From contig CM060731.1 in the NCBI GenBank assembly GCA_030704615.1, positions 94,798,001 through 94,862,000 on the forward strand: a DNA stretch of 64,000 nucleotides, read 5' to 3'. Below are positions 2,551 to 64,000 of this stretch, in pieces. This DNA comes from Takakia lepidozioides (taxonomy: Eukaryota > Plantae > Bryophyta). The notes beneath the pieces were generated by a model, which saw only the letters and a program-made list of their open reading frames with translations, had not been told where the DNA came from and did no database searches. Within the stretch, counting starts at the first letter, position 1; the number at the start of each line of letters is the position of its first letter. The translations under genes and the position numbers were made by a program.

Positions 2551-2554
2551 ACAG

Positions 2555-5984: not shown

Positions 5985-6468
5985 GAATTGGAGATGGGCA
6001 AGTTGGAGGACGCTAGCTTTCGTCTGCACCGATCTGTGGCGTCGACTCTTGGTGGCCTTGCTGCTATGGTGCCTCCTCCAGACGATACTTCGCATCCCAC
6101 AAGAAGGAATGGCAAAACAGTGCATCGGGTGGCTTCGGGGCCTGATCACGATGCGAAGGTGGAATCGGCCAGACTACTTCAGGCTCGGGTAACAGGAACT
6201 ATGGAAGTACCTTCACCTGGGTATGGACGGGTTTATACTTCACATCTGGGTCTGTTTTGCATGACAGGGCCTATCAGGTGACGGTGGGAAATTTTTCGGG
6301 GTGTACCTGTCCCGACTTCGTGTGCATGCGTGAGGAAGCTCTAGGAAAGAGAGAGAAATGGGTTCCCTGCAAGCATCTTTACTACATCTTTTTGCGCAGG
6401 ATGTATTTTGATCCCAAAAGAGACCAAATCATTCACCAGGCGACCCTAGGTCCTGGTGAGGTACGGAC
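5985..6468 (+). pseudogene. MULE family A C-terminal fragment (pre-SWIM and SWIM), cut by hAT insertion
   Basis: SHPTRRNGKTVHRVASGPDHDAKVESARLLQARVT and CTCPDF...PCKHLYY, collinear with 16353-17066, with a frameshift near 6250. Confidence 0.85.
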
Positions 6469-36063: not shown

Positions 36064-36083
36064 AGAAATGAAAGACATGGGAC

Positions 36084-38200: not shown

Positions 38201-38281
38201 AAGATGATGAGGCTTGGAGAGATGAGAAAGAACTGCACAAAGAAGTGGCAGATACCATAAGGGAAATGCAAAAGAGTTCCT

Positions 38282-41200: not shown

Positions 41201-42168
41201 TGCCTACTGAACCATTTCAGAAATGGGGACTAGACTTTGTTGGACCAATTAACCCACCAGCCAAGAATACACAGAACAAGTATATAATCACAGCCACTGA
41301 TTATACTACAAAGTGGGTGGAAGCTAAAGCTCTGAGGGACAACACAGCTAAGTCCACAGCAAGGTTCCTGTATGAGAACATACTTACACGATTTGGCTGT
41401 CCCCTGGAATTTATCAGTGACCAGGGAAGTCACTTCATTAATGAGACCATTGAACTATTGACTAAAGAGTTCATGATTGTGCATAGGAAGAGTACAACAT
41501 ATTACCCACAGGGTAATGGGCAGGCAGAGGCTACCAACAAAATACTATGTACTATCTTGGCTAAGATAGTCAATGCAAACAGAACAGATTGGGATACAAA
41601 GCTGCTGACAGCTTTGTGGTCATACAGGACTTCATATAAAGTCACCACTAAGTATACACCATTCCAATTAGTTTATGGTATGGAAGCTTTACTTCCAGTG
41701 GAATTCTTGTTACCTACCATGAGAACTGAATGGGGAAGGAGAATGGAATTGGAAGATTCAATTAAGGTCAGGAAACATGAATTATACCATGTGGAAGAAG
41801 TACGTGCTGATGCAGCTGATAACATGACCAGAATTCAGATGAAGAGGAAGGATCAGTTTGATGAAGGTAAATTAAAGACTTTTAAGACGGGAGATTTGGT
41901 ACTGTGGTTGCAGAAGAAGGGGAAGATTAAAGCTTCTAAGCTTAAATCACCATGGAAAGGACCTTATGTCATACAGAAGATGTATGATAATAACACCGCC
42001 ATGTTACAAACCATTAACAAAGAAATGCTGGGAAGAGTCAATGCCAATAAGTTGAAGGCGTACAGTGGTATCCATGACAAACCATTGCAGCACGATTTGC
42101 ATGTTGAAACAAAAACAGTCACGGGCTGCGCCAGTGATACCAACGGAGTATGGAGCACTTGTCGCTAA
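38282..42168 (+). pseudogene. pol: protease, RT, RNase H, integrase
   Basis: VLIDGGS; KLRVCVNYKKLN, FMDGFSGYNQ, MPFGLCNAPATFQR, FLDDF; CDAS, TTEREAL; HHCC, WGLDF, SDQG, NGQAE, GPY. One frameshift near 40125. Confidence 0.95.
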
Positions 42169-42211
42169 GCCGAGCGTGTATGACCAGGGCGGGAAGTACA
42201 AGTGTTTGCAT

Positions 42212-42376
42212 AGCTATCACAGCCCAACACAGCCTATCACAGCCCATCACAGCGTGACACAGCCTATCACAGCCCATCACAGTGTCACACAGCCTATCAC
42301 AGCCCATCACAGTGTCACACAGCCTATCACAGCCCACCACAGTGCCACACAGCCTATCACAGCCCAACACAGCCTA
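42212..42376. repeat. 30-bp (3x10) CACAGC minisatellite between pol and the 3' ORF
   Basis: CACAGCCTATCACAGCCCATCACAGTGTCA repeated about five times; a decayed equivalent lies at 33290-33390. Confidence 0.9.
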
Positions 42377-45300
42377 TGCAGGTTACACAGTCCATTAGGT
42401 CAGTGACAGGTGGACGCGGGTTAACGTCAGAAAAGTGGCCATCAAGTGAAGAAGAAGTTTGGAAGTCAAACTTGGAGAATATGCCACGCGGAGAGGGGAA
42501 GTCGGGGGCATGTCTAGAAATGGACACGTGGCCACTAAGGCGAAGCACACCGCACTGCATCAATTGCAAGAGTGGGTCTCATCATGCAAGAGGACAAATC
42601 GGGCCGTCAAAGTACCTACCCGGTACATCAGCTAAGACTATTTGTGGGCCCATTAATGCATTCAGAGTAAGGGTAACGGAACCCTTTCCGAGTACAGAAA
42701 AGAGGGACCTATGCCACATGTGCTGTCCTACTGGACATTCCAGGTGGGAATGTCCACGGAGGGGGGTGGAATTAAGAAGTTACCTAAGCAGGCAACAGCC
42801 AATCAGGAGTGCGAATTACATGCAGGTGGTTCCCTCCAAGAAACAAGAACAAGAAATAGGAAGTGTTATGAGCGGAAGAGTCGGGGTGGCTCCGAATAGC
42901 CAGTGTCTCGACGGTAGGGGCAATCAAAGCACTAGCTTTGTAGCTATGGCGGATGTAACGGATTACACACTCGCTTTACTTCTCACGCAGTGGCGCAAGG
43001 ACGGACGAATTGAGAGTACATTTTCTCTCACTCGATACTTGCAAGCCCCACAGGCTTACACGCACTTACCTGTTCCATTCTGTGCCAACCATACCTTCAT
43101 GCTCTGTGCCCTGCAAGCTTTCCTTCAGCTGTTTCAAACAAAGCCTTTTTGTTTGTCTAGAATGAAGAGAGTGAGGGGAATGGAGGATATCAGGGTGAAG
43201 AGCACCACGATTCTGCAGAAGCAAACAATTGCAGCACCGCAGGCAGTGCAGCTGCTAAGGGAGTTGCGATTGGAGGGGCTGCTACGCAAGGACTGGTCCT
43301 TGCATCATCGGCAGTATATGATTCAATTTCTTCAGAACTTTGAGCCTCGGACGGGAGTTACCCAGGTGAGGGGAGTAGATATAGAAATTACTCCCCAGTA
43401 CTTGCAGCAATTGTTTGATTTGCCATCAGGTCATGTGGATGTGGATGAGCACAGGGCAAGATTGCAGATAGGGAATTTGTTCCAAGAAGGGAGTTTCTTT
43501 AAGACTCAAGGTTACGCTTGTACCAAAGCCGAGTACCCAGGGCTCAGAGAAGTTGGCCAAATATTGAACGTTCTGTTTGCCATGAAACAGAACCAACAGT
43601 ATTTGAGCAGGTCATTCACAGAGGAGATCCTGAAAGCTTTGAGGGGAGAGGATGTAGCTTGGGCGGAGTTAATGTACAATGGTCTGGTGGACGAGATGAA
43701 GAGGTTACAGGGCACTGCTGCTAAGTCTCCGATCATTGTGTCTGGTCCAGTCATTGCCCAAATCATTCTTGACTCTTGCATACTTGATACTCGGGAACGT
43801 AAGGAGATGGGAGTGTTTGAGGCAGTAACCACTGCAATTGAAGAGCAGGGCTCTTCACATAGTGAGGGTGGACTGGCAGGGCAACACCAGTCTAAGAGAC
43901 AGAAGCGGGGTATGACTGTAGTGGCGGATCCACTGGCTTCACGGAAACCGCAAGATGATGTTTCCCAAGCTCTTGTGCAGGATGGGGCACAGCAGCACAG
44001 AAGGCTGTTATTATTGGAAGCACGGCCTTCGGAGAGGGAAGAGGAAGTCAATTCGGTACCACAGCCACCACAGCCAATTGACTCAGTTGTCTTAGAGGTT
44101 CCACAGTTAGAACATGCTGTGACACCACCCCCAATTGCTCTGGACGGAGAAAGGTTGGACATTCCCACTACAGAGCAGGTCGTGGCAGAAATTGAGAAGG
44201 GTGACCTTCTCTATGAAAACTCTGGCTTGGTAAGGGAATCAGTGGTTCCAGAGGTGCAGCGTTTGTCCAGGGAAAACCCTGCTGTGCATGTAATACCCAC
44301 ACCTGTGACGGAGGTACCAGGGGTAGAATATAAGGACACTGCAGCACCTGTGGAGGATGAGGTGGTTCAGGAAGAGGATCTGGTGGGGCAATGGCCTGAA
44401 TGGTTGGTGAGGCATCACACTGTGGAGGATCAGGGAGAACAGCAGCAAGTTCACCATGATGACCCCCAGCAGGCCATGCTTATGAGTTCCATAAGCAGGA
44501 CACTTAATTTGTTGGGCACTTATGTGAAATCCCATGTTCCATCTACCCAATTGGCAGCTTTGAGGGAGGAACTCAGGAAGGAGTTTGAGGCTCGAATTGC
44601 CACTGAGTGTGCTAACAAGGTAGATGAGGAGGTCAATCTCAAGTTACAGCAAGAGTTGGAGGACACAAAGGCTGCCTTGCAGTTGGCCAAGGGACATTTG
44701 ATTGAAGCAGGCCTCGAGCAGGACCAGTTGCATGAAGCACATAAGCAACAGTTATACCAATTGCAGGTGAAGCATGAGGGCAAGTTGCAAGAAGTGAACG
44801 TACTACATACAGAGTTGGAGGCAGTACATGAGAAGATGACCATACAATGTGCTACACTCACAACTACTCTAGAGCAAACTGCATTAGAAGTTAACAGACA
44901 AGGGAGAGATGTATGAGGGCAGAAGCTGAGATAATAGAGCAAGCAAAACTCATTGTTGATATGAAGAATACAATCTGTCGCAATGAGAATACTTTCAAAC
45001 AATACAGACAGGTTGAGGCTGACCAGGAGAGGTACATCCTGGAGTTGCAACAAACAGTCATGGTCAATAGAAATGAACTCTCTGTGGCTAACAAGGCTTG
45101 GAAGGAAGCCAATAATCTGGCTGCTGCCTATGCGGGCCTGGTTGAACCTCATGCAAAGCGCATGGAGGCTTTACAGCAGCAGTTAGATGTGTACAGACTC
45201 ACGGAGGAGCAGACTCTCAGGGGTGCCACACAGGACTTGGTGGATAACCACCTTATGCAGGTCTGGTTAGCACAAGGGCCGGTAGAAGGCAAAGCACCAC

Positions 45301-46700
45301 GGAAGCTCACCCAGGGCGAGATGAATGAGCTCAGATTGCAGGTGCAGAACATTGCCACAACTACTATAGACAATGTCTATAGTAGGATAGCGGAGCTACA
45401 AGAGGATGTGGAAGGCCTGCAGACTCAAGTGGATGACCTGAGTTCAAATATTGACAAGAGAGTCTTTGTTCCTGAGGAGCAGCTGATGGCTACTTATTTA
45501 CATGCCAGGACTCTAATTTTTCAGTCTTCTTCGCAGGAGATGCCAGTGGTAGAAGGGCCAGTGGTACCAATACCACAGCAGGTGGATGTGCAGGTAGCTG
45601 ACCCTGTTGTTACTACAGCCACACCACAGCCTGAGGTATGGGGGGATGCTGCTTTTAACCCACCTAGGACTCCTGCTGCACGGGAGTACAGTCGGGCTAT
45701 GATTATGCCCTTCAACCAAATTCCCATTGTGCTGGATTTGGCTTGGAAGGAATTTAGTCCTCCGCAGTCGTTGGCACATTACTACCAGATCATGCGCATT
45801 TGGTTGCCGGTGGCAACTCGGACTAAGGTTCTTCCGAACAATCGACCCATTGAGGATCATCACTTTGCAAGGTACTGGTCTGAGGCAGGTACCATGCTGA
45901 AGGAATTAATTGCCTTCCAGGTTGTACATGGGTACATTTATACCAAGACCAAGGAGGTATCTAGTATTGTCATGGGCTGTGGATTATACTATGTTGCTTG
46001 TTTTCTGGCACGTTATCACATTGAGCAGCAGAGGATGCAATCACGATTTCTGAGTTATTCCAGTGGGGATCATTGGGTCTTACCTTCAATGCCACCTCAT
46101 ATGTACCTATATGATGCAAAAGTTATGATGCAGAAGGATTCCCAACTTCGTTCATGGTTTAATTCGGCTTGGAACAATTTGACAACATAGAAATTTGGCC
46201 CTGAGGATATTTTCTTTAAGGGACATGAAGCCTGGAAATACTTACACTGTTCCAAAGTCATTGGCACACCTCTCACCTATACGGATAAGGAGTTCAGGGT
46301 GTTCACTAATTTTGCTTGCAAGCGCTTACAACAAGTTATACAGTTTAAACTTCCAGACATGGTGGGACCACATTGTATGCCACACAGGATTCCACTTAAA
46401 GTTCGGCCGTTAAAACACCTAAGGGGGGACGAGGATTCTGATACTACTGTTTCTTCATAGGACTCTTTTGACATGGCAGAGGACTATGCACTTCAGATGG
46501 CAGAGAAGAAACGACGGGGATCTCCTATGCCTGAGAGGTTACCTCGTTATCAGCCAAAGGAGGGTCAGACATTTCCAGGTAGTGCTCAATCATCTCCATC
46601 AGCCAGTGACAGGACTCGGGCTCGCACACGGAGTCCTTCACGCGACTCTCACCGACAGAAGGGTGCTCGCTCACAAAGGTTTGCTGATCCCAAACAGTAA
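42376..46700 (+). pseudogene. Large sense 3' extra ORF (846 aa + 425 aa + tail, frameshifted)
   Basis: CHMCCPTGHSRWEC knuckle; VRGVDIEITPQYLQQLFDLP resembles the plant-transposon-protein motif of Athila-like extra ORFs; long E/Q/L coiled-coil stretch. Conserved in the older copy. Confidence 0.75.
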
Positions 46701-47800: not shown

Positions 47801-49145
47801 GCAAGGAGATTGCAAGCATTGGTGGCTACTTTTGTACTCCCATTGGATAGTGCATCCTCCCTGCCAACCGGGACGGTTGAGGCAGTGAGTAGGGGCGAGC
47901 ACAGGATCATGGGTTGCAAACACCCATGGCAGATGTGGGATGAGATGCGCAAAGAGAGAGTCATTGGATCTCTCAAGCAGCAGTATGAGGAGTGGGGAGA
48001 GCCACGGACTAATGATCAGTTGGAGGCCAAGGTGGCCAAGGTTTTTGAAGAGGTGAGAATATTTCTTGCTCAGAGGATATTCTCAAGGTGGCTATGGCGG
48101 AGCAAGTACAGACTACGCCACAGTCAGATTGGGCGGACAAGGCCTAAGAGGTTGCTATCTAGCAACCAAAGGATTCGTTCTCCTACCTCCAAGTCTGGTG
48201 TACCCGGTTGCAGTCATAGGGACAATTGGGAACCAGATGTTGGACCTACAGTCACCGGAGGAGAGATGGAGGATCCAGCAATTTCAAAGGGGCTTATATA
48301 AATTGTTTTGCCTTCAGTTTGAAGGATTTGGGGAATTGAAGGGTCAGGAGATTTGTAATGATTTGGCAAGTGACACGCCAATCTTTCAAAGGCCCTACCG
48401 GTATAGTGACATGGAGAGGTCATTGATCCAGTCACGGACTATGGAGTTGTTCAAAGCTGGATTGGTGGAGTTGTCAGGCGGGGAGTATGCCTCTTCAACG
48501 GTGATGCCAGCTAAAAAGGAATCTATGGCAATTGGACAGAAAGAAGGATGTGTGGGGACTATCGTCCTGTGAACCGTCAGACTAAGTCCGATAGATATGC
48601 CATGCCAAACTCCAGAGGAGATCTTTGATGCTATTGGACATACAAAAGGTTTAGCACATTGGACTGCGATCCGGTTACCACCAGTTGCCAATCAAAGAGG
48701 TGACAAGCAAAAGATGGCATTCTGGGGGATTGACCAACAGGGAAGGAGGATTGGTTGTACCAATGCGGTTCTTACCGTTTGGGTTGAAGAAGAATGCTCC
48801 TGAGAGTTTCAGAGGGTCATGGATAGGATTCTCGCGGGCTAGACTTCGCCTGGGTGCTACATTGATGACATCATTGTCTTTAGTGCTACGGTTGAGGAAC
48901 ATGAGAGACACTTCATGTGGTATTTGGACGCTTGAGAGCGCACGGGTTGAAACTGCACCGGAGAAAGTGCAAGTTCTTCCACAATCAGATTGAGTATCTG
49001 GGCCCCATGATATACCCTGGAGGATTGGGTGTTCAACAGACAAAGTGGAGGCCTTGCATGCATTCACGCCCAGAGTGTGAGCAGAGTTCTGCTTTCATGG
49101 GATGGCCAAACTACTATCGACGGTTGTCAAGGGATTTCATTGCAA
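47800..49145 (+). pseudogene. Linker and gypsy RT of the DNMT-bearing family
   Basis: PIFQRPYRYS, RRMCGDYRPVNRQTKSDRYAMP, SGYHQLPIK, LPFGLK, YIDD, KCKFF..IEYLG. Many indels. Confidence 0.9.
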
Positions 49146-50240
49146 GGAGCTTCAAGACCTGGGTCAGAGTGGCTCTGCTATTTCATGAGTATGACAAGGC
49201 ATGACATAGTAGTCAATGTTTTCATGCAGTTAGTAGTAAGGTTTGAAACATGAGAGGACAGTTCTTAGCAGTATTGGTAGTGAGGCGGAGGCAGTGTGAA
49301 AGGGAGGTAGTAAGGCACAGCGGTTTACAGTGAGAAGTATCAGGAAAGTGCGCAAAAGTACAGAGTTAGTATCAGTACTAATGCAGTATGTATCAGTGAT
49401 ATAGTATAGTAAAAGGAGTATAATTAAGGGTTGTGAAGGAGTAAACAATCAGAGAAAGCAGTAGTAGAGTTTGTTAGGAGGTTGTCGACTAGGATGAGTA
49501 TGTTAGAGTAGTGCAAGTGCAGATTTGTGCTAAGAGTATGGGGATTTGGCGACTAGTCGTAATAGAATAATGACGGTAAGTTCGTAAGATGATTAGCAGT
49601 CTAGGGTCTAGCCGAACAAATAATGGAAAGTGTCCGTGCATAGTGTGCAGGTGAGTGAAAGGTAGTGTCGGAGAGGTAGGATTTGGAAATGGGTAGTGAG
49701 TGGCATGAGCGGCATGAGAGGTCTGAGTTGGATGTAAAATGAGTGAATGTAAGCAGTAGTAGTTAGTACCGTCATTCAGTGAGTACACAGTGGAAGTACA
49801 AATTTCGAAATAAAAAACAATTAAAAAACACTTAATGCAATGTGTCAAGAAAAACAATTTATTATTCGGTCCTTGAAGGGAAACTGCAGTTTTGACAGTT
49901 GTGCATGATATTTCGTATTCCGCTCATGCAATTCCAGCGACATGTGCAAATGGCGCCGAATTCGCGGTAATATGGTCCGTAACCTGAAAAAACGGCAACG
50001 TATTCGCAGTAATAGGTCCTCTGGCAAAATTGGTGCCGAAAATTCGCGGCTATAGGCCCTCATGACAGGTAATCGGCGCCATTTTTCCAGAAATGGCCCA
50101 ACAACTGATTCTGTTGGATCCAATTTGAATGGAATATTTGCCTCAGTCAGGAGTTTGGGGTGCATGTCATTACACTGCAAAAAAAATATGATACAGCAAA
50201 ATGCATTGACAAAATCAATTGGAGGATTCCCTTTGCCCCA

Positions 50241-53200
50241 TCAATGATTCTGGAATCCAAAGGAGGAGTTTGTGAGCGCGTTCACGCTCAACGCGAGTGC
50301 ATGAATAAAGTCATCAATAGTCACGTTCATCCTCAACCTCTTCAGGTAAATGTAATACAGATGCTTGCACGGATAATACTTCGAACCCTTCTTTGCTTCC
50401 ATCAACGACAAGTCCGTACAATTGCAAGTCGGCTCCACTCCAATCGTAATTGTGTATACATCGTCGCTTACAAGCCGAGCCGGCGTTGCCATCCGATTAC
50501 ACACGCCCAAGGGCGGGTGGGGGTACGTCCACGGAGTCTGAATAGTGCAAGCCATCCCAAGAGCATTGGCAATCCGAGTCTCATTCAACTTGTTGGGAGG
50601 GTGTCGTCTCTTCACTCTTCGAAATCGCATTGTGGGATGTGCAGAAGAATGTCCAATCCGTCTCTACTGGACCGAGCAGTCTGCAATGGCTGGGTCTGAG
50701 GACCGGAAATGCGTTGGCCGGGATGTCTGTGCGTTGCACCATTCGAAATCCCCCTGCTGCAGAAAGAGCATCCGCCTCATTTGAGAGAGGCTGCCAAACC
50801 CGGTGCAACAGGCCGATGCCCGGAGGCTCCGGCATTCCCTGAATCACGTACTTGGGCTTGCGCCAAATACACAGGTCATTATGTCGTGCCTACAGAACAC
50901 AAAATGTCTGCGTTGTGGCGTGAGCAAAGGTGGGAGTCAAAACTCTGCCGCTGATGTTGAAACAAGGTGCAGGTACAACACTGTGTGGGTTCCTCCGAAT
51001 CATCTCACCACAACGTGCTCTCGTATCCACCCGGATGGCGCAGTACTTCCCTTGAAATGCCGGCAATGTCCTTGCAATTCTCCACTGTGGACTCCAACAC
51101 TCTTGTCTCCACAATGGGAATGTTGTACTGCTTTATTACAGATGGCTCGTTATGTTGCGGGGCACGCGCCCTGTGCTCGAAGGAGATGGCGATCTTGAAC
51201 GTGCAGGACTTGCGGTGCTCGACGAGACCTCCTGGGCAACATCACCGGACCACGAGGGAGCGTGCAAATATCTTGTCGCTCGCCATGAAATCTCTCCCGC
51301 CAGGTGCTCGTCAAGTCTTGTCTCACTGGAGGGATGAACATATCCTTCCAAATGTTGGCCTCTCGCAGCAATGGCGTGTCCCGAAGGCCCTCTCGCAAGG
51401 CGCCGCCCACTTCCGAGGATTCTTCGATCTAGAGGCAGTCCGCATCAGCATTTCCTGCCTGTCCGGCCCCAAAGCCCCACTGTTTCCCTTTCAAGAACTC
51501 GTTGTATCTGCATTGCTGATAATTGACCTCACAATGTCATCCGTTGTGGCAGTGAGGATGTCCACCAGATGTGCCGCGCAGAGGAGGCACGCCAGGAAGA
51601 GTGCATGATTCGGCATGTTTTCGTGGGCATGTCGGTGTCGGGAGGTCAAGACACATTTCCTGCACAAGCACATGTTGAGGTTACAAGCAAGTTACAAATA
51701 TGGCCAAGAATAATATTCAACGGGACGCGAATTCGTGCAATTCACCTCCCGCATATAGTCGCCGACCTGGAGGAAACGATAATGCGCCATGCTAGCCACT
51801 GACCATTGCTCCCTCGTCTGATTCCTTACAGCACCTGACGATGTCCACCAAGCCCGTATGCATGCAAACTGTGTCTCTGCATCATCCAGGTGGGAGCGCG
51901 CTTCCACGCAAGGCACATGGAAACGGTTGCTCTCTCTGAAATCTGCGCCACGAGCCTGGTTGTGTACTGCGAAAGCTCTGCAGAAAATGGAACCCACAAG
52001 ATCTCTCCTTGCCTTCTATGGGAACATTGGGGTCTTGCCCGTACACCCTTCGGATGGCAGCCCAATTGCTTGTGCGTTGTCCGCATGAAACCACGGAAAT
52101 GGGAGGGGGCAATCCCGCCTTGGCCATCTGTTCGTTATTTTCCCTGCCAAAGAGCATCCAATTGTGTGTCCTCTCCTTTCATCTCACAAATAGCAATTGT
52201 CATGTGCATCCTGCAGTGGGGTAGTAGAACATGTGCACCCATTGTCACCCACTGGTGATTATAATTCGCTTGATATGGTCGAACATGACCCAACTGTTTG
52301 ACCAGTTCCCACTCGTCATCCTGTCGACCAGTTCGACGCCGCTGCCAGGTACACGTGGACATTTTGAATACGAAACAACGATCTGCCTCAGTCCCTTGTC
52401 CTGGAAACCTACTTCCATGAATATAGTCATATCCACATCGTCGCTTCACCTCCAGAATGGAGTGCATATCCGAGCCACGCCCAATTTTCTGTTTGCATGA
52501 GACAATGTGGTTTCGGACATTCGGTGAACATACGTGGGACACCGACTCCAGCAATGCCTCCATTCCTTCTCGTCGAGGAGGAACTCTATCGGAGCCGTCT
52601 TCCGACATAATTCTGGCCAATGCCATCTTATGGGCGGCTTGGAGCTGTATCTGTTTGGGTTTGGCACCCGGTCTCAACTTAACCTCCTCCTGAACGAGCT
52701 GTCTGCTTCGTGGGCAGCCTCCGCGAGTTCCCCCTCGCCAATTTGTGACAATGGGAAACCAAACGTGTATGCAAGCTCGGGTGAGGTCAGGGAAACGGTG
52801 CAATTGCCAACACATAGAATGATTGGCATTACAAACAGACATGCAGTGTGGTGGTTCTTGCAATGCGCACACTAAATGTGGAGTTCGGAACCTTCTCCCG
52901 AGCTCGAAATGGTTGATGAGCTTGTGCCTGTCCAATCGGTCTCGTCTGTGACCTTGGATTAAAGTGAAGCAAGTTGGAGAGAGAAACACCGCAACGAGCG
53001 CACCGCACAAACAACGTAGTGCACCCGCACACCATCGAGCATCTTCATGCTGGTGGTTTTGGTAACGCACCAAGGATGACCGTCATGTTTTCTATCCAAT
53101 CTGTCAACATTCCGGACGCCCTCGAGTAGTCCGCCCGAGGAGGGAAACTCAAAGAAGATATTCCGTCGACGTCGGCGGGGAGGAAGGATGTAACCGATTA

Positions 53201-53820
53201 ATTGCGAACTTGCGTAGTCCAGCCCGGCCAGCTCGACCGGTGTCCTCCATGTGAAAGCCCTCGCAGAATTTCAAGAATAGATCGAACTGCGGTGCTCGTG
53301 CGGGAATATGACTCCCTCCTCCACTGACGTCCATTGAGGACTTGCCTGATCTCCAGGACGACCTCGGAACTTCCATGACCTCGTCTGAGTCGGACAGGGT
53401 GTGTGAACAACCCGGTTCTTGCTCGTCTTCATGGATGGGTTTGGCTCTGGATTTACTTCGTTGCGGACTTCTCTCTTTGAGGTAGCCACTCTCTGATTCG
53501 CGGATGTTTCGTGGAAGGCGCCAGGATAGAAGGTGCATTTGGCGGGCAAATGAAGTCCCCAACAGCCCTGTATATGACGTGGTCCGATGGTGGAACTCGC
53601 CATCCCTGCCATCGCCAAAATCATCGGGAGCACAACAATAATCTCGAACAACAAGGCCGTTAGAGTTCCTTCCTTTCCTCCTCAAAAAAACCGACCCCGG
53701 TTTCAGGTGGTATCGAACGCACAGATATTTCTCCTCACCCGGCAGATGTACTCTGCACGGAAATGAAGCTCATAGCTCGTGAGGAGGGCAGTACAGTGTA
53801 GCGCTCGGGTTTTCCGCCAT
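50241..53820 (-). pseudogene. MULE family B transposase (same architecture as family A), indel-rich
   Basis: HGSRFPGQG...FVFKMS, WVMFDH, AICEMKGED, CTCTD-like SWIM (PTCNCTD...YPCKHLYY). Collinear with 16353-19919 but diverged. Confidence 0.85.
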
Positions 53821-53832
53821 GGGAGATGTGCA

Positions 53833-54678
53833 GCTTTGCCTTCAGTTTGAAGGACGTGGGAGCACTGAAGGGTCAAGAGATCCGTATTGAGTTGGCCACT
53901 GACACGCCAATCTTCGGAGACCCTATAGATACAGTGACATGGGAGGTCTTTGATTCAGATGAGGACTCAAGATCTCTGAGGAGGCAGGGTTTGGTGGAGC
54001 TCTCTGGTGGAGAGTATGCTTCAGCCCAGTGATGCCAGCCAAGAAGGATGTTATGCAATTGGGGATGGAAGAGAGAGACGTATGGTGCGGTGATTACGGC
54101 CTGTAAATCGTCAGACCAAGTCCGATAGGTATGCCATGCCGACACCAGAGGAGATCTTTGATTGCCACTGGGCATTCCAAGGTCTTTAGCACATTGGATT
54201 TACGATCCGGATATCACCAGTTGCCAATCAAGGAGGCGGATAAGCAAAAGACGGCATTCTGGGGGATCAATGAGCACGGGGAAGGATTGCCTTATACCAG
54301 TGGCGGTTCTTACCATTTGGGCTTAAAAATGCTACCGCTGAGTTTCAAGAGTCATGGACAGGATTTAGCAGGGGTGGAGTTTGCTCGGTGCTACATAGAT
54401 GGACATCTCATCTTTAGTGCTACGGGGGAGGAGCATGGAGAGACACCCTTCAGGGGGTATTTGAGCGATTGAGGACGGCACTGAGTGAAGTTAATCTGGG
54501 CAAGTGCAGTTTTTCCAACAACCAGATTGAGTTATCTGGGTCACATGATATATCCTGGAGGATTGGGGGTACAGCAGACTAAGGGTAGAGTCCATTGACA
54601 GGTTCCACGCCCCGGATGTGACGCCGAGTTCGGCTTTATGGGGTAGCAAACTATTACAGCCGGCTTTGTTAAGGGATT
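53833..54678 (+). pseudogene. Second gypsy RT fragment of the family seen at 48.3-49.1 kb
   Basis: FAFSLKDVGALKGQEIRIELATDTP, ELSGGEYAS, VFSTLDLRSGYHQLPIKEADKQKTAFWG, CYID. Confidence 0.9.
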
Positions 54679-55178
54679 NNNNNNNNNNNNNNNNNNNNNN
54701 NNNNNNNNNNNNNNNNNNNNNNNNNNNNNNNNNNNNNNNNNNNNNNNNNNNNNNNNNNNNNNNNNNNNNNNNNNNNNNNNNNNNNNNNNNNNNNNNNNNN
54801 NNNNNNNNNNNNNNNNNNNNNNNNNNNNNNNNNNNNNNNNNNNNNNNNNNNNNNNNNNNNNNNNNNNNNNNNNNNNNNNNNNNNNNNNNNNNNNNNNNNN
54901 NNNNNNNNNNNNNNNNNNNNNNNNNNNNNNNNNNNNNNNNNNNNNNNNNNNNNNNNNNNNNNNNNNNNNNNNNNNNNNNNNNNNNNNNNNNNNNNNNNNN
55001 NNNNNNNNNNNNNNNNNNNNNNNNNNNNNNNNNNNNNNNNNNNNNNNNNNNNNNNNNNNNNNNNNNNNNNNNNNNNNNNNNNNNNNNNNNNNNNNNNNNN
55101 NNNNNNNNNNNNNNNNNNNNNNNNNNNNNNNNNNNNNNNNNNNNNNNNNNNNNNNNNNNNNNNNNNNNNNNNNNNNNN
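54679..55178. other. Assembly gap (500 N)
   Basis: Run of exactly 500 N followed by a (CT)n tract. Confidence 1.
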
Positions 55179-56637
55179 CTCTCTCTCTTTCTCTCTCTCT
55201 TGTCCCTTTTTCCAATGACCCATCGCTCAAACAGCTCTCATCTCTTTTGTCAGACTTCAACCCAAATACCCCAACATCCCTCTTTTCCCTTCAACTGTGG
55301 AACACAGTTGTTCAGATCCTGATCCCATAGTGAAATCACCTTATCCTTTCCATTGTTTTTTTTGCAACTCCAGCTAACCATCATTTGATCTCTCCAAACA
55401 AACAAGCCAGATCTACATTGGTTCCAGGTTATCACTACACACAGGCAGCATGGGTGTCCAGGTTTATGACACTGAATCAAAATGCAAGAATGAAGACAAC
55501 AGTGGACCATTCTGAATTCAGTGACGAACAGGCTCTCTCTTTCTCTCTCTCTTCACTTATTTCTCTCACTGTCATCACAACATCAGGTGCATCCATCCTT
55601 CCACGTTCTGGTCTGAAGTCCAGAGTCTCCATTCCCATTTCAAAAACTTTTTTTGTCACATGTCTCTACCTTTTCTCTTCTGCCAAGATGCAGTCCTAAA
55701 TCTACCAAAGCAATTTCTAAGTCCTGGCAAAAGAAGCCTCTGTTCATCGACTTATCTGTTTTTTATCCACTAGTGAAGCGGCGGTGTCTGCCTGTCAAAG
55801 TGGGCCACCTTGCCATCGCCCCGTCAGCAGCCACTTCAACCCTTTCTCTTTGTCTTGATTCCAGACCTTATGACGCCATGATGGCTCCCCTTCTTCACTT
55901 GGACCATCCTGTGGCTTGACAACCAGATTACGCTATGCAATTCTCCTCTCGAATTGGCCTGGTCCTATAACAAGGAGAACAAAGCAAGCTAGAAGCTTAA
56001 TGACAGAGAACCCGAGATACCATACAGCCAGAACTCCACATGCTTTACCTTCCCCCCATTGATTGTTGGTCCAGACTCTCTTCCCTGTGCTTTCAGCAGC
56101 TGGCCTTTTCCTTGCTTGCTCATCTGCCCATAACTATCATCTTCAAGGCACTGGCGGCAGTGGTGGTGCGCCGCTTTCCTTACATGCTTCTATCTCTTGG
56201 AATTGATCATCACTACAGAGAGAGGCGGCACCGCTTCTTTCTACACAGAATACCAAGCAGAGGCGTCTTAATGCCGCTTCCTAAGCCAAGCAAGATCCCA
56301 CCGCGCAGTACAACCTCCTAACACAGGCTGGCCCTGCCGACACCACTCCTTTGCAACAGCCGCTACGAGCCATCCGTCATCTTCCTCTTCGTTTTTCTCA
56401 ACCCGCGATCTTTTAGGTCAAGAATCAGTGATGAAAACGTTCATCGCATGGATGAAAATGTGTACCGTCATGACTTAGCCATTTTCTCCTGGCAAAGCAT
56501 AAGTTCAGTGCGCTCATGAAATTACCTTCATGAAGGGATACATCCTTTCTGCAGTTGGGATGACGCGGCAACCCGTCATAGTGATGTAGGTCGTAATGGT
56601 AAACATATGTAATGTTCTGCCCTGCATTCACACTACA

Positions 56638-57388
56638 GATGACCGTCATGTTTTCTATCCATATCTGTCAACATTCCGGACGCCCTCGAGTAGTCCGCCC
56701 GAGGAGGGAACTCAAAGAAGATATTACCGTCGACGTCGGCGGGAAGGCATATAACCGATTTAGTTGCGAACTTGCTGTAGTCCAGCCCGGCCAGCTCCGA
56801 CCGGTGTCCCTCCATGTGAAGCCCTCGCAAAATTTCAAGAATAGATCAAACTGCGGTGCTCGTGCTGGGAATATGACTCCCTCCTCCACTGACGTCCATT
56901 GAGGACTTGCCTGATCTCCAAGACGACCTTGGAACTTCCATGACCTCGTCTGAGTCGGACAGGTTGTGAACAACCCGGTTCTCGCTCGTCTTCATGGATG
57001 GGTTCGGCTCTGGATTTACTTCGTTGCGGACTTCTCTCTTTGAGGTAGCCACTCTCTGATTCGCGGATTGTTTCGTGGAAGGCGCCAGGATAGAAGGTGC
57101 ATTTGGCGGGCAAATGAAGTCCCCAACAGCCCTGTATATGACGCTGTCCGATGGTGGAACTCGCCATTCCCTGCCATCGCCAAAATCATCGTGGAGCACA
57201 ACAATACTCTCAACAACAAGGCCGTTAGAGAACTTCCTTTCCTCCTCCAAAAAAACCGACCCCGGTTTCAGGTGGTATCGAACGCACAGATATTTCTCCA
57301 TCACCCGGCAGATGTCCCCTCTGCATGGAAATGAAGCTCTATGCTCGTGAGGAGGGTAGTACACTGTAGCGCTCGGGTTTTCTGCCAT
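56638..57388 (-). pseudogene. 5' part of the MULE family B gene, near-identical to 53075-53820
   Basis: MAENPSATVYYPPHEH... through ...EFPPRADYSRASGMLTDMDRKHDGH, truncated at 56638. Confidence 0.85.
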
Positions 57389-57619
57389 GGGAGATGTGCA
57401 CACAAGACTGCCAGGATGGCGTGCGGGGAAGCTCCCTGGATGCAGCGATGGGAATGAATTAGATGCCGATTTGTCCGAGCGACGAAGCCTGATCCAAATC
57501 CAGGGAGCCAACTATCTCAAAAATCCACAGTCAGAGTGTTAATGAACCTTGTCTCCGGAATGCGGCCCCTGGTCTTTGCGCAATAACTGTCAACGGTATG
57601 CAGTCAGAAAGTGGGGGGC

Positions 57620-59135
57620 CGTCCGGATGATGTCGGCTGAAGGGGAGAAGTCGGCACCGTGCCGTCACATTACTACCCCCGAATGGAAATTCGGCACCCA
57701 ATATCCAACAGGGGAAGCCCGGATGAAGTCGCCTCGGGCGCAGAGGCCGGCGCGTGTGCGACAGAGAACATCCCCTGGATGGAGATTCGGCGCCGAATTT
57801 CCATCCGGGGCGGTTCGGATGCAGTCGGGGAGGGGGGAGAGGTCGGCACTTGGCCGTCACATTTCAACCCCCGGACGGAAATTTGGCACCGAATATCCAA
57901 CAGGGGACGCCCGGATGAAGTCGCCTCGGGCGTAGAGGCCGGCACGTGTTCGACAGAGAGCATCCCCTGGATGGAGATTCGGCGCCGAATTTCCATCCGG
58001 GCCACCCCAAAGGAAGTCGTGTCGGGGGTCAGACCGAAAACTGGCCGACATAAAAACCTCCCCAGATGGAAAAACGGCGCCGAATTTCAATCCGGGGCCG
58101 TTCTAATGCAGTCGGGGAGGGGGGAGAGGTCGGCACCTGGCCGTCATATTTCAACCCCCGGACGGAAATTCAGCACCGAATATCCAACAGAGCGGCGGAG
58201 AGGCCGGCACCTCTCCGACAGAGACCATCCCCCGGATGGAAATTCGGCGCCGAATTTCCATCCAGCAGGTAAGTGGAATCCCGGATGGATGGAGATCCGA
58301 ATTTCCATCCTGCAGGTAATTCGAATCCCGGATGGATGGAGATCCGGCGCCGAATTTCCATTCTGCAGGTAGTTCGAATCCCGGATGGATGGAGATCCGG
58401 CGCCGAATTTCCATCCAGCAGGTAAGTGGAATCCCGGATGGATGGAGATCCGGCGCCGAATTTCCATCCTGCAGGTAGTTCGAATCCCGGATGGATGGAG
58501 ATCCGGCGCCGAATTTCCATCCAGCAGGTAAGTCGGATCGCTGGCGTATGGATATTCGGCGCCGAATTTCCATTCGCCAGGTATTTCATCGCTCAGAATT
58601 ACCTTCCTGCAGGTAATTCTGATCGATGAATTACCTTCGTGCAGGTAATTCTTATCGATGAATAACCTTCCTGCAGGTAATTCCGAGCGTAGGAAGGTAA
58701 TTCATCGCTCAGAATTACCTGCAGGAAGGTAATTCTGAGCGATGAAATACCTGGCGAATGGAAATTCGGCGTCGAATATCCATACGCCAGCGATCCGACT
58801 TACCTGCTGGATGGAAATTCGGCGCCGAATTTCCATCCATCCGGGATTCGAATTACCTGCAGGATGGAAATTCGGCGCCGGATCTCCATCCATCCGCTCT
58901 CCGCCCAACCTTGCGGATGGAAATCTGGCCCCGGATTTCCATCCATCTGCCTCCGAATTACCTGCTTGAGGGAAATTTCGTGCGCCGCCCTACCTGCGCG
59001 GATGGAAATCCGGCGCCGGATTTCCATCCATCCGCTTCTGAATTACCTGCTTGAGGGAAATTTCGCGCGCCGCCCTCCCTTCTGGATGGAAATTCGGTGC
59101 CGGAATTACCTCTACGTTGGAAATTCCGGGCCTCT
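57620..59135. repeat. Array of GGAAATTCGGCGCCGAATTTCC palindromes with a central inverted repeat of about 188-bp arms
   Basis: Perfect 30-bp palindrome GGATGGAAATTCGGCGCCGAATTTCCATCC at 58234-58263; about 54-bp tandem units; arms about 58435-58622 and 58709-58896. Confidence 0.95.
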
Positions 59136-60054
59136 TTCCGTCGATTTTCATCCGACATGGAGGGCTTTATCCGACATTTAATTGCGCAGTTGGGCAATAA
59201 ATGTCCACCGCCGTCGGTTTTCATTCGGGCTGGCGACACATGGCTTCCTGGATACGTACCCTAAATCTCATGCTAATCTTGGCTTAACATGCTATTCGAG
59301 GCATGTACCCCAAAAACGGAGATCTTTTTCCATTTTGGCTGGGACTTATGCCGCCTGAAGGGCGTGGCTCTCCCGAGAGAGACCTCACATCCAGACCGCA
59401 GCGGAAGTTGAAAGCTCTGTACTACGGACGACGGCCAATCTCTCGCATGGCCAAACTGAAGCTCCAGCAGGAGATTCCAGTGTCTTGCTCACAACCCGCG
59501 CCAACTGAAGCCGAGTACTCTCAGGCAAGCCACTTCTGCTTTTGCTTTGTTCGATTTCTTTTTGGCTTTCGCTTTGTTGCCTCGCTTTGTTTTTGCATCT
59601 TCATCCTGGCTTCGCTGGATGAGTGAACTTTAGATAGTTGAGTGAACCTTACATTGTTTGCAATGCGTGTGCAAATCCGGCAGCTGTGGAGAAGGCTGCT
59701 TGTGCATGTCATTCTCAGGCAATTGTTGCATTTGTTTTCATTGTTGTTGCATGGCTCTCCATACTTCCTAAACTTGTTATGTTTTCATTTTTGTTACACG
59801 ATTGTTGCTATGGTGGTTGCGCTGCTCGTTGCGATGCTGGTTTTTGCACCGATGTTGGTTTTCACGATTTTTGGGAATCACAGAGTGACGACGAGCCCGG
59901 CACGCTGGTGGTATCATTGACAGCTCCAACTCATCGCATGTTTGAATCGCCCAACTTGGGGCGAGAGGGCAAACTTCAACCTTTTGTTGGTGGACGGGAG
60001 GACTTGCAACGACAGTACGACAGAATAGGCATTGGGGAGGTTGGTGCAGGCGGC

Positions 60055-63000
60055 ATGGCAGGTGAAGGGCGTGAGGACATGAGGACAGCAGATCCGGCAA
60101 TGGAGGTTGTTCATGCACATGCAGTAGGGCCCGCCCACGCAAAGAAAAAGAAGAAAGCTAAGCACATGCAATCCCCGGCGAGAGAGCCGTCACGGGCTGC
60201 GGAGGGGGGAGTGAGCAGTGCGCGCGAGGGTGTCAGTTCGCCTCAATCAAAGGTGGTCGTCCTGGAGGGCTCCCCTGCTGCTAGCCCTAGTAAGAAACAG
60301 AAAGCCCGTGAGAGGGCAAAAGAGAGGGCAAAAGAACAGACGAGACAGAATGCTAGCCAGGAGGAAAGAGAAAAGGCCACTGAAGAGGCCAGGGGTGCCC
60401 AAATGACAGATGCCAATGTAAGCGAGGGACGCACAGAGACGGTGGATCCCTCCAAGACACCACAGAGAGGCAGTAACACACCGGTTAGACCATCGCGGGC
60501 AAGAGCAGCCCCCGCAATTACCCATACGGTGGAGAGTGGAGGAGAGGAAAGAACACCAAAAGAGCACGGATTGTGCAAGTTCGAGGTGAAGCCAGGGAGA
60601 GGGCAGTAGAGACGGGGAGAGTGCTGGAGGTGGTTTCGCAGGTGGCTGACCCTGTTGAGGAGGACGACAGGGAGCTTTCTGACCAGGATGACATCCTCCC
60701 GGACATCCCCAGGCCCCAAACCCGGAGCATACAGGCTGGATTTGGCGGTCCTGGTGGGCTGCCGGAAAACCCCTCTGCAGCAGACGTCATGTCTGAGGCG
60801 GATATGAAGTTGGCCGCTGCCAAGATGTTGGAGGCAACCCACAGCAACATTGGCAGGGTGCTGGGGGGCATGGTGTACCCGGCCAAGCTTCGAATTCCCC
60901 TTTGCCGCTTGGTGTCATTGCAGGTGGTGAGACCTGCCCTCCCAGGCGATATCGACAAGCTGAAATTCTCTTTCCGGGATGGATATCGAATGGGGTCTGC
61001 CGCGTTTTACGTTTCCATTGAGAACGACCACGGAGCTTCCCGTGCCCACACTTCCGATGAGGTGGACAAATGGGGTCCCCATTGGCAAACGCGAAATGAG
61101 GAGTTCGAGAGATCGATTGCTAGTGATCCTCTTTTCCAGCACTTGTCCGGTAAGATGTTCTACGTGTGGGACGGCAATCATCGCCTCCTGGCATGGATGG
61201 AGCACATTGCCCAAGCCCACCCCAACGACCTCGATTGGCATTTCGCCGTGGATTGTGTTGTGCTGAAGGTTGCGGGGCCCAAAGATCGCAGTCTTCTCAA
61301 AGCTGCAATGGCCGACATCAACTCGTAAGCTACAACCCCTCTCGCTTTTGGACTTTGAATTTGGAAGTCATTTCATTGCGAATCCTCATATATGATGAAA
61401 ATTCCCATTTCAGTATTGTTTGATGGAAATGTGGCACTGCAGGGTGACTGAGAATGCCTTCATTGCCACCAACTTGTCCCATATGCTCTTCCGAGTGAAG
61501 GATGTCGGGAAGCAGGGGGTGCAAGAGTTTGCCAATTCCCTCAGTGCCGACCTCCTGCGCAAGTCGGAGGCAAAGGCAGACAGAACCTGGTATAGGCTGA
61601 GCGTCGACGCCATGGTGGACTACATATTTCGGGTAAAGCTCCTGACAGTTTTGTTGAGCTAATCTGTCTCTCCTCCCCCAATAGAAGAAATTGTGTTGAG
61701 CAGGATCTCTAATCTTATGTGCGCATTCTTGACAGACGAAAATACAGCAGGATTTGGCACATGCGCGGAGGTTCTACATGGAGTCAGAGGAGAAGAATCC
61801 AACCCTCCCGGAACTCGAATCGTATGTCAAAGCTGCGGAGGTGAGGGCCCGCATAAAGTACAAGTCGCGGATGGTAAAGTAAGTGGCCATAGCTGATCCC
61901 GCCCTTGGTGCCGACTTTCTGGTGGAGGTGGGGAAGCACTACTCTCGCGCTCTGAAGCCCACGATGACATTGGAGAAGCTCCATCGTCTAGCCACATCCT
62001 GTGTGGATGCAACAGAAAAGGTGATACATTCTTAACCAAATTGTGGTGGCAACAACTCTTTTTTGTGGTGTTTGGCGCTTACGAATATGCTGGGTGGTTG
62101 GACAGACCCGGTGGCTCCAAATCTGGAATGGTTCCCAAAGTACCAGGGACATGTGGAGCTTCCCCAAACCGGACAAACTCTCTGACCCCACATTCGACAT
62201 GTGGATGAACCGCATGACATGGTGGTTTCAGGTACTTCCCCACGCTTCGTTTGGGGCTTCTACTCTAGTAGGGGGTGGATTCATTGTATTTTTGAAGGAA
62301 AGCGATCTGATGGAGAATCTCCACAGGTGACGACGAATGCGCAAGAGCAGCTGGACACACAAGCACATCAGTTCAAGATGGAGATATCTCCTGCAGCAGA
62401 GAGCCTACGTGACTATGTGACGAGGTACTTTCTGCTCTACAAAACCAACCTATTCTTTCGGGAGATAGCAAATGCTCGCCGGAGCCACGAGTTCACCGAC
62501 CAGCCGAACGCGGACAAAGCAGCAATGCGCCTTCTGTACAGGTACATACGCGCTGCCTTTCTTTCAAGTCCTTGCATTTCAGGATGTTAGAAGCCTCATG
62601 TGGTGTTAGGGAAAATGGCGCCGAATTTCCAGTCAGGGCTCCGAAAATGGCTAAGTCCCTAGACTGGCTGGCCCGGAACTGGAAATTCGGCGCCATTTTC
62701 CAGTTCCAGGCCCTATTGCCGTTCAGGGACTTGGCCATTTTCGGGCTAAGTCCCTAGACTGGCTGGCCCGGAACTGGAAATTCGGCGCCATTTTCCAGTT
62801 CCAGGCCCTATTGCCGTTCAGGGACTTAGCCATTTTCGGGCTAAGTCCCTAGACTGGCTGGCCCTGAACTGGAAATTCGGCGCCATTTTCCAGTTCCAGG
62901 CCCTATTGCCGTTCAAGGACTTAGCCATTTTCGGGCTAAGTCCCTAGGGTGGCTGGCCCCGAAGTGGAAATTCGGCGCCATTTTCCAGTTGTAGGCCCTA

Positions 63001-63969
63001 TTGCCGTTCAGGGACTTAGCCATTTTCGGGCTAAGTCACTAGACTGGCTGGCCCTGAACTGGAAATTCGGCGCCATTTTCCAGTTCCAGGCCCTATTGCC
63101 GTTCAGGGACTTAGCCATTTTCCGGGTAAGTCCCTAGGGTGGCTGGCCCCGAAGTGGAAATTCGGCGCCATTTTCCAGTTGTAGGCCCTATTGCCGTTCA
63201 GGGACTTAGCCATTTTCGGGCTAGATCCCTAGGGTGGCTGGCCCGGAACTGGAAATTCGGCGCCATTTTCCAGTTCTAGGCCCTATTGCCGTTCAGGGAC
63301 TTAGCCATTTTCGGGCTAAGTCCCTAGGGTGGCTGGCCCTGAACTGGAAATTCGGCGCCATTTTTCCAGTTCTAGGCCCTATTGCCGTTCTGGGACTTAG
63401 CCATCTTCGGGCCAAACCGGGAAAAATGGCGCCGAATTTCCAGTTCAGGGCTCTCAAGATGGCTAAGTCCCTAGGGTGGCAGTCACCGAAAACCGAAATT
63501 CGGCGCCATTTTTCCATTTCTAGGCCCACTCACATCCGCCCCAACCTGGGAAAATGGTGCCGAATATGCATTTCAGGGACCTCATTGTGTTTTTCATGAA
63601 TGCAGGTACTGCAAGTTCCCCTTTTGGAGAAAGGTCATCTGTCTTTCGAGCCACCATTCTTCCTGGCATGGAGGAACCTTGGGGCTGACTCCATGTACAC
63701 TGACGATATTTGTGAAGGAGTGGCATCTGGAACATTTGCGTGATTGCCCTTGGTATGTGGACCTTCCGCCCGGCTCGCTCGACCCATCCGAGTTTCAATT
63801 GAAGCTGGATGCTGAATTCCGACGAAACCGGGCTCTGCTGCCTCCGTTGGGTGCAAAAGAGGCAAAAGCGCTTGCGAACTCCAGGAAAGCGGCAGAGCTT
63901 GCTCAGGCAGGAATTCAGGAGAAATTGCATGAGAAGAGTAAAGGCCAAAGGAAAAGGACAAGAAAACAG
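60055..63969 (+). pseudogene. Multi-exon gene for a ParB/Srx-fold protein, continuing beyond the window
   Basis: RIPLCRLV..VRP, FYVS and FYVWDGNHRLLAW. Frame-compatible GT-AG exons: about 60055-61324, 61443-61632, 61736-62020, 62106-62231, 62327-62541, 63606-63969. One frameshift near 60570 and one TAA at 61880. Start codon uncertain. Confidence 0.8.
62584..63566. repeat. Tandem array of about 95-bp units (about eight) inside an intron of the ParB-like gene
   Basis: GGCTAAGTCCCTAG...GGAAATTCGGCGCCATTTTCC...AGGGACTTAGCC units, flanked by the 11-bp direct repeat TGCATTTCAGG (62573-62583, 63567-63577). Confidence 0.92.
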
Positions 63970-64000
63970 GTGAGTGCAGTAACACCCAAAAAGAAGAAAA

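Follow-up and report, generated by a model that had tools for sequence, protein, structure and literature searches.

A probable dead copy of a two-gene transposon family with a ParB-like gene and palindrome arrays in Takakia lepidozioides

The right-hand end of a 64,000-nucleotide stretch of the bryophyte Takakia lepidozioides (GenBank assembly GCA_030704615.1, contig CM060731.1, positions 94,798,001 to 94,862,000 of the forward strand; hereafter the window, numbered from its first letter) probably holds a DNA transposon copy that has been rearranged and is dead, from a two-gene family found in land plants. The family combines a transposase with a divergent gene for a ParB-like protein, here called the DGNHR gene after a motif in its product, and with arrays of palindromes (Table 1). 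Comparisons with relatives and structural models establish the fold of the ParB-like domain, the architecture of its protein in relatives, and the conserved linkage and orientation of the two genes. They also establish that the nearest relatives have kept the palindrome core and that the ParB-like domain is under purifying selection. An earlier reading made from the letters alone (the sequence-only reading) had proposed a candidate new mobile system. That was an overstatement, because ParB-fused DNA-modifier genes have been published in transposons of brown and red algae.

Table 1. Features of the element copies and their immediate surroundings, by position in the window
Feature	Position	Strand	Basis or remark
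Short degenerate array, ~4 motif copies, GGCGCC palindrome core	49940–50100		Directly 3′ of transposase copy 1
Transposase copy 1, near full length, decayed	50241–53832	−	Family-profile hmmsearch, tblastn, stop-to-stop frames
Ty3/gypsy reverse-transcriptase fragment	53835–54678	+	Adjoins 5′ end of transposase copy 1; not part of the element
Assembly gap	54679–55178		Flanks unrelated; no element gene crosses the gap
Transposase copy 2, 5′ fragment only	56638–57400	−	ATG 57388, ~250 codons, cut off at 56638
Divergent intergenic spacer with tandem palindrome arrays	57615–59110		Tandem Repeats Finder (TRF), motif counts, inverted-repeat search
Putative N-terminal low-complexity exons (Lys/Glu/Ala-rich)	59303–60606	+	Stop-to-stop frames; model uncertain
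ParB/sulfiredoxin-like domain exon	60489–61324	+	Core ~60870–61324; DGNHR is residues 200–204 of a 251-aa open reading frame (ORF)
Four middle exons	61443–61632, 61736–62020, 62106–62231, 62327–62541	+	tblastn/tblastx to P0001/P0004/L001/L002 and splice sites
Array-bearing intron or insertion	62546–63605		95-bp unit × 8 with half-palindrome GGAAATTCGGCGCCATTTTCC; inverted motif copies at bounds
Last exon in window	63606–64000	+	Frames compared with L002 11226–11930

The two genes lie head to head, as the sequence-only reading had described. The transposase runs leftward from its ATG at 57388, and the multi-exon DGNHR gene runs rightward from ~59300 to beyond position 64000, with its domain exon at 60489–61324. 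About 1.5 kb of palindromes, in counts far above expectation, does separate them, and the assembly gap does leave the transposase 5′ end, array and ParB-like gene together and uninterrupted on its right side. One point tells against that reading in its simple form: the 'fuller copy', at 50241–53832, is a separate, frameshifted copy to the left of the gap. Since the two transposase pieces align to one and the same N-terminal part of the profile, they are two copies and not halves of one gene. Copy 2 spans profile positions 24–247, is collinear in tblastx with a related locus from another genome (L001), and is 94.2% identical over 760 bp to the part of copy 1 at 53075–53832. Copy 1 contains at least four frame changes, is matched by the family profile A2 in hmmsearch at 53270–51695 in several frames, and retains a C-terminal SWIM-like CxC...CxH pattern (SWIM E 0.058). 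To the left of the gap lies a reverse-transcriptase (RT) fragment (Pfam RVT_1, E 1.2e-4; 77% identity to 48307–49136), and the right flank, 55179–56637, is unrelated CT-rich DNA. It is very unlikely that the duplicated transposase 5′ end is a scaffolding or haplotype artefact and that the true locus has one complete transposase beside the array. The duplicate does flank a gap of estimated length, in an assembly with many single-base frame changes, but the copies differ by 6% with indels and each joins different DNA at both ends (the RT fragment versus the array; a coding continuation versus unrelated sequence).

Recurrence in other genomes bears out the earlier suggestion that these are parts of one element, as the head-to-head layout with a repeat-bearing spacer is found there again. 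In tblastx the window gives collinear matches to L001, a 21-kb locus with a GC content of 39%, in which the transposase is on the minus strand, the ParB-like gene is on the plus strand and ~4–5 kb lies between them. Two further contigs of the same genome have the same layout, and between L001 and L003 the two genes and their spacer agree at ~80% identity. A scan of metagenome contigs of the Joint Genome Institute (JGI) yielded 80 loci, to which two further loci of the liverwort Riccia sorocarpa were added, and linkage was counted on the 20 non-redundant loci whose upstream sequence reached 8 kb or more. A transposase lay upstream on the opposite strand in 13 of these and on the same strand in none; the linked metagenome contigs are 30–50% identical to the window in the ParB domain.

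The Riccia copies show that the unit is dispersed. L004 5031–15791 (CM100801) and L089 3688–15764 (CM100799) lie on different chromosomes and share ~10.8 kb at 97.5% identity between flanks that are unrelated, and each carries a transposase, a spacer array, a ParB-methylase gene and a second, downstream array of 66-bp units (CCAGCGG-ACC-CCGCTGG). L089 has a 1.2-kb insertion and is left-truncated; the left edge of the common block marks a truncation, since the transposase last exon finds a match beyond it. One Riccia copy is annotated with a continuous 1207-aa ParB-methylase product. A sharp left boundary is common to four copies in the genome of L001: L001 755–860, L002 814–915, L085 5381–5480 (reverse complement) and L087 7116–7144. 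This terminus begins AGCGACCCTATAAAAGGAGCCGTGAG and contains the hairpin CCATGAGCA...TGCTCATGG. It is 84–88% conserved, as against 72–77% for the coding sequence.

Between copies, the ratio of nonsynonymous to synonymous substitution rates (dN/dS) in the ParB exon is 0.21–0.30, which shows the ParB-like domain to be under purifying selection. The recurrent layout, the dispersed near-identical copies, the common boundary and these dN/dS values place the two genes in one dispersed unit, and comparative evidence thus supports treating transposase, array and ParB-like gene as one element family. Of the co-occurrence that the sequence-only reading had put up for testing, linkage (13 of the 20 loci) and a common left boundary (four copies) held up, whereas neither terminal inverted repeats (TIRs) nor a target-site duplication (TSD) was found at the boundaries that could be defined.

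The DGNHR domain is well conserved. The window exon has 11 relatives at 39–53% identity, and the family alignment shows 22 invariant residues; within DGNHRLxAW the G, N and R are invariant and the D and H reach ≥90% conservation. A profile search returned 1,146 cluster representatives at E ≤ 1e-3, and the named members are annotated proteins of R. sorocarpa and of the fern Adiantum nelumboides. No PDB sequence or profile match was obtained at E ≤ 10. An AlphaFold2 (AF2) model has a mean predicted local distance difference test score (pLDDT) of 72, with 71–94 per 10-residue block in the core (residues ~100–250). When it was compared with the PDB by Foldseek, the first 20 matches were all sulfiredoxin (Srx), ParB, Noc or PadC structures (probability 0.63–0.98, mostly ≥0.9; E 0.02–0.2). 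Target-normalised template-modelling (TM) scores of the top matches were 0.3–0.65, and KorB was also among the neighbours. Matches in BFVD were phage ParB-like proteins, including a 'DNA methylase' (probability up to 1.0, E 1e-3 to 0.1). With modest E-values and high probabilities, the modelling shows a predicted ParB/Srx fold, and the earlier assignment passes this check with neighbours drawn entirely from Srx, ParB, Noc, PadC and KorB.

The motif itself falls at the junction of a strand (196–200) and a helix (202–215) in the model. ParB (GERRxRA) and Srx (GGCHR) carry a phosphate-binding Gxx(x)R motif at such a strand-to-helix junction, and DGNHR is a putative motif of the same phosphate-binding type. 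Behind the domain comes a conserved helical region, and the loci showed no ParA-like gene.

In relatives, profile matches show the protein of the second gene to end in a predicted beta-class (N6_N4) methyltransferase-like domain. The sequence-only reading had foreseen an N6_N4_Mtase domain, and the C-terminal PF01555 motif-I matches that agree with it occur in homologues only. They include Riccia protein P0163 (1207 aa) and its fragments P0161 and P0164 (E 5e-5 to 9e-6, 23.7–26.2 bits), and the last exons of L001 (E 5e-6, 27.0 bits, above the 26.7 cut-off), L002 (E 1.4e-4, 22.3 bits) and L003 (E 8.7e-4, 19.7 bits). A D-x-P-x-G motif farther upstream, at the place of DPPY, also counts in favour of the assignment. 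These proteins have ~1,000–1,200 residues with a long middle region; BLAST picks up no similarity between the middle and C-terminal regions of the Riccia protein and either the window or L001–L003. UniRef names the Riccia accessory-protein fragments 'Trimethylguanosine synthase'.

The window copy is dead: its transposase is truncated and its DGNHR gene carries one nonsense codon and frameshifts. A frame change within 60489–60606 is required to enter the ParB exon from the low-complexity exons, and the N-termini of homologues are unconserved. Farther on, an in-frame TAA stands at 61880–61882, where L002 has a sense codon. From 63606 the last exon shifts out of frame and back (~63606–63740) relative to homologues, and tblastx matches 63712–63798 to L001 11837–11923.

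The palindrome arrays are real and far above chance, and they sit in non-coding DNA of the element, chiefly in the spacer. Their unit is a 12-bp core, TTCGGCGCCGAA, within a 22-bp palindrome. The 22-mer GGAAATTCGGCGCCGAATTTCC occurs 18 times at ≤3 mismatches (0.00 expected), the half-site form GGAAATTCGGCGCCATTTTCC 13 times, and the 11-mer core AATTCGGCGCC 33 times (0.44 expected), with every occurrence of the last within 49952–63507. TRF resolves units of 96/192, 53, 32 and 85 bp in 57642–59104 and an array of eight 95-bp units at 62649–63412. The core had been said to recur 3′ of the left transposase and in the intron array, and it does: there is a core match at 49952, and 49948–49962 and 50073–50090 match the intron-array core exactly over 15–18 bp. 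The spacer also holds a large inverted repeat, 58384–58638 against 58693–58947, with 255-nt arms that are 92% complementary and a centre near 58665. Taken whole, 58384–58947 is a 560-bp near-perfect palindrome with a 54-nt centre. It arose by recent inverted duplication and could be a cruciform or fragile site.

The 95-bp array lies in an intron or insertion, 62546–63605, that is not present at the matching position in L001–L003. It is flanked by a 9-bp direct repeat, TACAGGTAC (62537–62545) and TGCAGGTAC (63597–63605), which matches at eight of nine positions, also fits the splice-site consensus and is the sole TSD candidate. The repeat could be the 9-bp TSD of a non-autonomous relative that has become a spliced, introner-like intron; alternatively, it could be plain splice-site consensus.

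Among relatives, the spacer of L002 has a 73-bp × 4 array with the identical 12-bp core. L001 and L003 carry TG/CA-decayed variants at 8–9 sites (0.1–0.3 expected) in spacer, introns and downstream sequence. Most of these copies have the form TTCGGCACCGAA or TTCGGTGCCGAA (for example at L001 3216, 9168, 15910 and 16376), in which CpG of the core has become TpG or CpA, a change that deamination of methylated CpG would bring about in old copies. The exact core was not found in more distant loci; it is, on present comparisons, lineage-specific and not universal. Other inverted-repeat arrays occupy the spacers of Riccia (L004/L089; ATTCCGGCGAG-G-CTCGCCGGAAT in 127-bp units), L007 (GAGGTGCC...GGCACCTC), L016 and L027, the last two with units of their own. 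Such lineage-specific arrays are consistent with a co-evolving protein and site, and the pattern does not indicate which protein.

The first gene appears to encode a divergent Mutator-like transposase with a zinc finger, a DDE core and a SWIM-like finger, a name accepted at the motif level only because the motif order matches that of Mutator/IS256. The family has 126 relatives at E ≤ 1e-3. Its alignment shows a conserved N-terminal Cys/His pattern, C..GH..C.N..C...C..C, like the zinc finger of WRKY/GCM1. By eye, this alignment continues with MFDHV (first D) and CDMQSED...W..L, then GFMADSAQANWNAV (second D) with a C..H 29 residues on as the CxxH motif, and then SCNLAETVHNAW (third acidic residue; N..E..HN.W motif) before the C-terminal CxC...CxH finger. 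The layout, which is motif-level evidence only, was read from alignment A2 and from a better-preserved copy elsewhere in the window (16353–19925, minus strand).

Several results weigh against the proposed two-gene family. For the accessory protein, no member's DGNHR domain has a Pfam match (ParBc, PF02195, included), and neither a helix-turn-helix (HTH) nor any further kind of DNA-binding module was identified, though the stretch behind the domain was not modelled. The canonical motif IV, [DNS]PP[YFW], is absent from the Riccia and Adiantum proteins, and a six-frame scan of L001–L003 for it found one unrelated site only. At the place expected for DPPY stands a D-x-P-x-G: DLPTG in Riccia, DVPFG in Adiantum and DHPHG in L002 and L003. 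Methylase activity is uncertain because the canonical catalytic motif is absent. The AF2 model of the methylase-like region (P0163, residues 900–1207) failed, with a pLDDT of 43, and the window's own gene leaves at 64000, before the domain is expected.

A further count on that side concerns linkage: seven of the 20 loci have no transposase within 8–10 kb. These loci, and the nested transposon mosaic that makes up the window, would suit the view that the adjacency reflects a host gene captured once, in the style of a Pack-MULE (a Mutator-like element, MULE, with captured host sequence), or chance proximity in repeat-rich DNA. This view is largely refuted and highly improbable, given the identical order and orientation in a liverwort, on at least three contigs of another genome and on many metagenome contigs, the conserved palindrome core, and dN/dS of 0.2–0.3 between copies.

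The transposase raises its own difficulties. Pfam MULE, Transposase_mut and DBD_Tnp_Mut match none of the window pieces, the L002/L003 ORFs or nine members of 700–800 aa; SWIM alone is found, below threshold (E 0.04–0.08), with CxCxnCxH present. The GCM-DDE-SWIM MULE of the sequence-only reading is accordingly a label drawn from motifs. A PDB sequence search with the transposase gave no match. TIRs were sought by self-blastn of L001–L003, local end alignment and fuzzy search for the shared left and the Riccia right termini, and no inverted match of either terminus appeared within the loci examined, outside which the opposite true element ends may lie. Nor is there a TSD at the ends of the Riccia block, whose left end is a truncation. 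MULEs without TIRs exist.

These gaps would suit a transposase of another superfamily, for instance Plavaka/CACTA, Zisupton/KDZ or Sola, and there is precedent for such misclassification, through resemblance of accessory genes or motifs, in Bostrychia (bioRxiv 10.1101/2025.02.11.637652). We consider this unlikely. Although long TIRs and a firm 9–11-bp TSD are missing, the motifs follow one another as in MULE/IS256, Pfam shows none of the Transposase_21/24 or DUF4218-type matches that CACTA/Plavaka would give, and one 9-bp near-duplication does flank the array insertion.

The last difficulty lies in the better-preserved transposase itself, which has three in-frame stops, no frameshift and 47% identity to P0223. 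Directly upstream of it stands a 2.7-kb array (116-bp × ~23 units, with inverted repeats of 15-bp arms, CTCAAACAGTGTGCG-GCAA-CGCACACTGTTTGAG; array at 21111–23819, transposase and array together 16353–23819), and no second ParB-like domain occurs anywhere in the window. Because this transposase has an array without a ParB-like gene, arrays may belong with the transposase or its promoter and not with ParB. Subterminal repeats occur in many DNA transposons. It is therefore possible, though doubtful, that the two genes travel together while the arrays are transposase-binding or promoter/enhancer repeats, and that the ParB-methylase acts on something else, for instance host chromatin, RNA or the transposition complex. 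The second array is the best evidence for this; in addition, the WRKY/GCM1-like zinc finger of the transposase could read such sites, the motif recurs 3′ of the transposase gene, and the ParB-like protein has no HTH that was found. On the other side, long terminal repeat (LTR) retrotransposons overrun the region beyond the second array, so a ParB-like partner may have been lost there; tandem palindromic sites are the classic ParB substrate; and in red-algal Plavaka elements arrays adjoin a ParB-like gene (bioRxiv 10.1101/2025.02.11.637652).

That the accessory protein recognises or marks its own palindromes, as the sequence-only reading had it, is a reasonable mechanism for the proposed family. 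The protein would load at the element's own palindromes as ParB loads at parS. Once loaded, it would modify or protect the DNA or chromatin of the element and so help the element to remain active. A far-reaching version, unlikely in our estimate, is that land plants harbour a large, unannotated Mutator-like family with its own parS-like system, including loading at lineage-specific arrays gated by nucleoside triphosphates (NTPs), spreading, and self-writing of N6-methyladenine (6mA) or N4-methylcytosine (4mC) by the fused non-canonical methylase domain, in which protein and palindrome co-evolve. Were this true, a self-directed 6mA/4mC mark would counter host silencing by 5-methylcytosine (5mC) or license transposition.

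The setting of these copies is a repeat-rich mosaic of nested transposons. The region consists of dead transposon copies nested in one another and is not a host gene cluster, and the practical result for the window is annotation as such. LTR retrotransposons occupy the part of the window between positions 27.6 and 46 kb. One of them, a Ty3/gypsy element at 35368–46190, has ORFs for protease/RT, RNase H and integrase and, after them, two long ORFs, 42376–44916 (846 aa) and 44913–46190 (425 aa), for which Pfam gives no match. The best named matches of a Ty3/gypsy integrase ORF are from Riccia, Calypogeia, Marchantia, Cryptomeria, Taxus and Adiantum (44–50% identity). A hAT transposase remnant lies at 6895–8807 on the minus strand (Dimer_Tnp_hAT, E 1.3e-9). 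An exon-like ORF at 4582–5130 (plus strand) matches the methylase motif-I exon of L001–L003 (tblastn E 9e-11) and has no Pfam match; SWIM-like transposase fragments lie nearby at 2415–2558 (minus) and 6242–6391 (plus), and these pieces are probably remnants of further such elements. An Rfam search of 49000–64000 found no family.

The family would extend from algae to land plants the class that joins a fusion of ParB fold and DNA modifier to a cognate inverted-repeat array, and it points to an abundant family unseen by Pfam for transposase and ParB-like domain alike. The R. sorocarpa copies offer a place to ask whether plant transposons mark their own DNA with 6mA/4mC. The same copies allow the question whether the ParB fold of a eukaryote still serves as a site-specific, nucleotide-gated DNA clamp.

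Known systems resemble the family in different parts. Bacterial ParB–parS shares the fold, an arginine-containing motif at the strand–helix junction and clustered palindromic sites, whereas in the plant protein an HTH/dimerisation domain was not identified (the post-domain region was not modelled) and no ParA partner was seen. VANC of the Arabidopsis VANDAL elements, which are Mutator-like, reportedly recognises tandem-clustered short motifs in the non-coding DNA of its own element and alters methylation (work attributed to Fu 2013 and Hosaka 2017). Its motif and protein are said to co-diversify between lineages, and VANC, which is described as lacking a ParB or methylase domain, reportedly causes 5mC loss.

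ParB–methylase fusions are common in phages (PMC12704722). Those of phages and plasmids place a ParB-CTPase fold before a PF01555-type methylase, are linked to mobile elements, and in some cases bind ATP rather than CTP (PMC12704722). The domain order is shared with the plant proteins; the phage and plasmid fusions are prokaryotic, intron-less, recognised by Pfam and equipped with a canonical DPPY, whereas the plant proteins have D-x-P-x-G and a long middle region. Fusions of ParB-HTH with Dam-type methylases in chlorophytes and chytrids derive, according to the portion of the source consulted, from phage ParB–terminase loci (PMC4738411). In that portion the methylase belongs to group 2 (Dam/DpnM type), the listing does not include land plants, and linkage to a transposase is not stated (PMC4738411). 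Among bryophyte enzymes, MpDN4MT1a/b of Marchantia are beta-class N4/N6-type methyltransferases of prokaryotic ancestry with a TSPPY motif (bioRxiv 10.1101/2021.02.12.428880). A link to these was considered and dropped, for TSPPY stands there and D-x-P-x-G here, and the paper mentions neither a ParB domain nor a transposon.

Closest by description are two algal systems. The brown-algal Sola1-1_Ec32 of Ectocarpus encodes a 1104-aa ParB-like and DNA methyltransferase protein on the strand opposite its transposase, and its authors propose that the protein binds and epigenetically modifies its own transposon (PMC12477816). The differences are the brown-algal host and the Sola1 transposase. In red-algal Plavaka elements, PAG3 has an N-terminal ParB-like domain, similar at the HHpred level only, with inverted-repeat tandem arrays adjoining (bioRxiv 10.1101/2025.02.11.637652; Curr Biol 2025). 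PAG2 carries PF01555 fused to SET, and PAG homologues are reported in Mutator, Zisupton and Fanzor elements of Chondrus (bioRxiv 10.1101/2025.02.11.637652). There the ParB domain is fused to a 2-oxoglutarate (2OG) oxygenase, the methylase is separate and fused to SET, and the transposase is CACTA/Plavaka. Common to the plant family and the PAG3/Sola1 type are an accessory gene divergent from the transposase and a dispersed multi-copy unit; PAG3 also shares inverted-repeat tandem arrays beside the ParB-like gene, as in the window, L002, L004/L089, L007, L016 and L027. A literature search found no report of such a ParB–methylase transposon system in bryophytes or other land plants. The concept was described in algae in 2025, and the present family is a new member of it from land plants.

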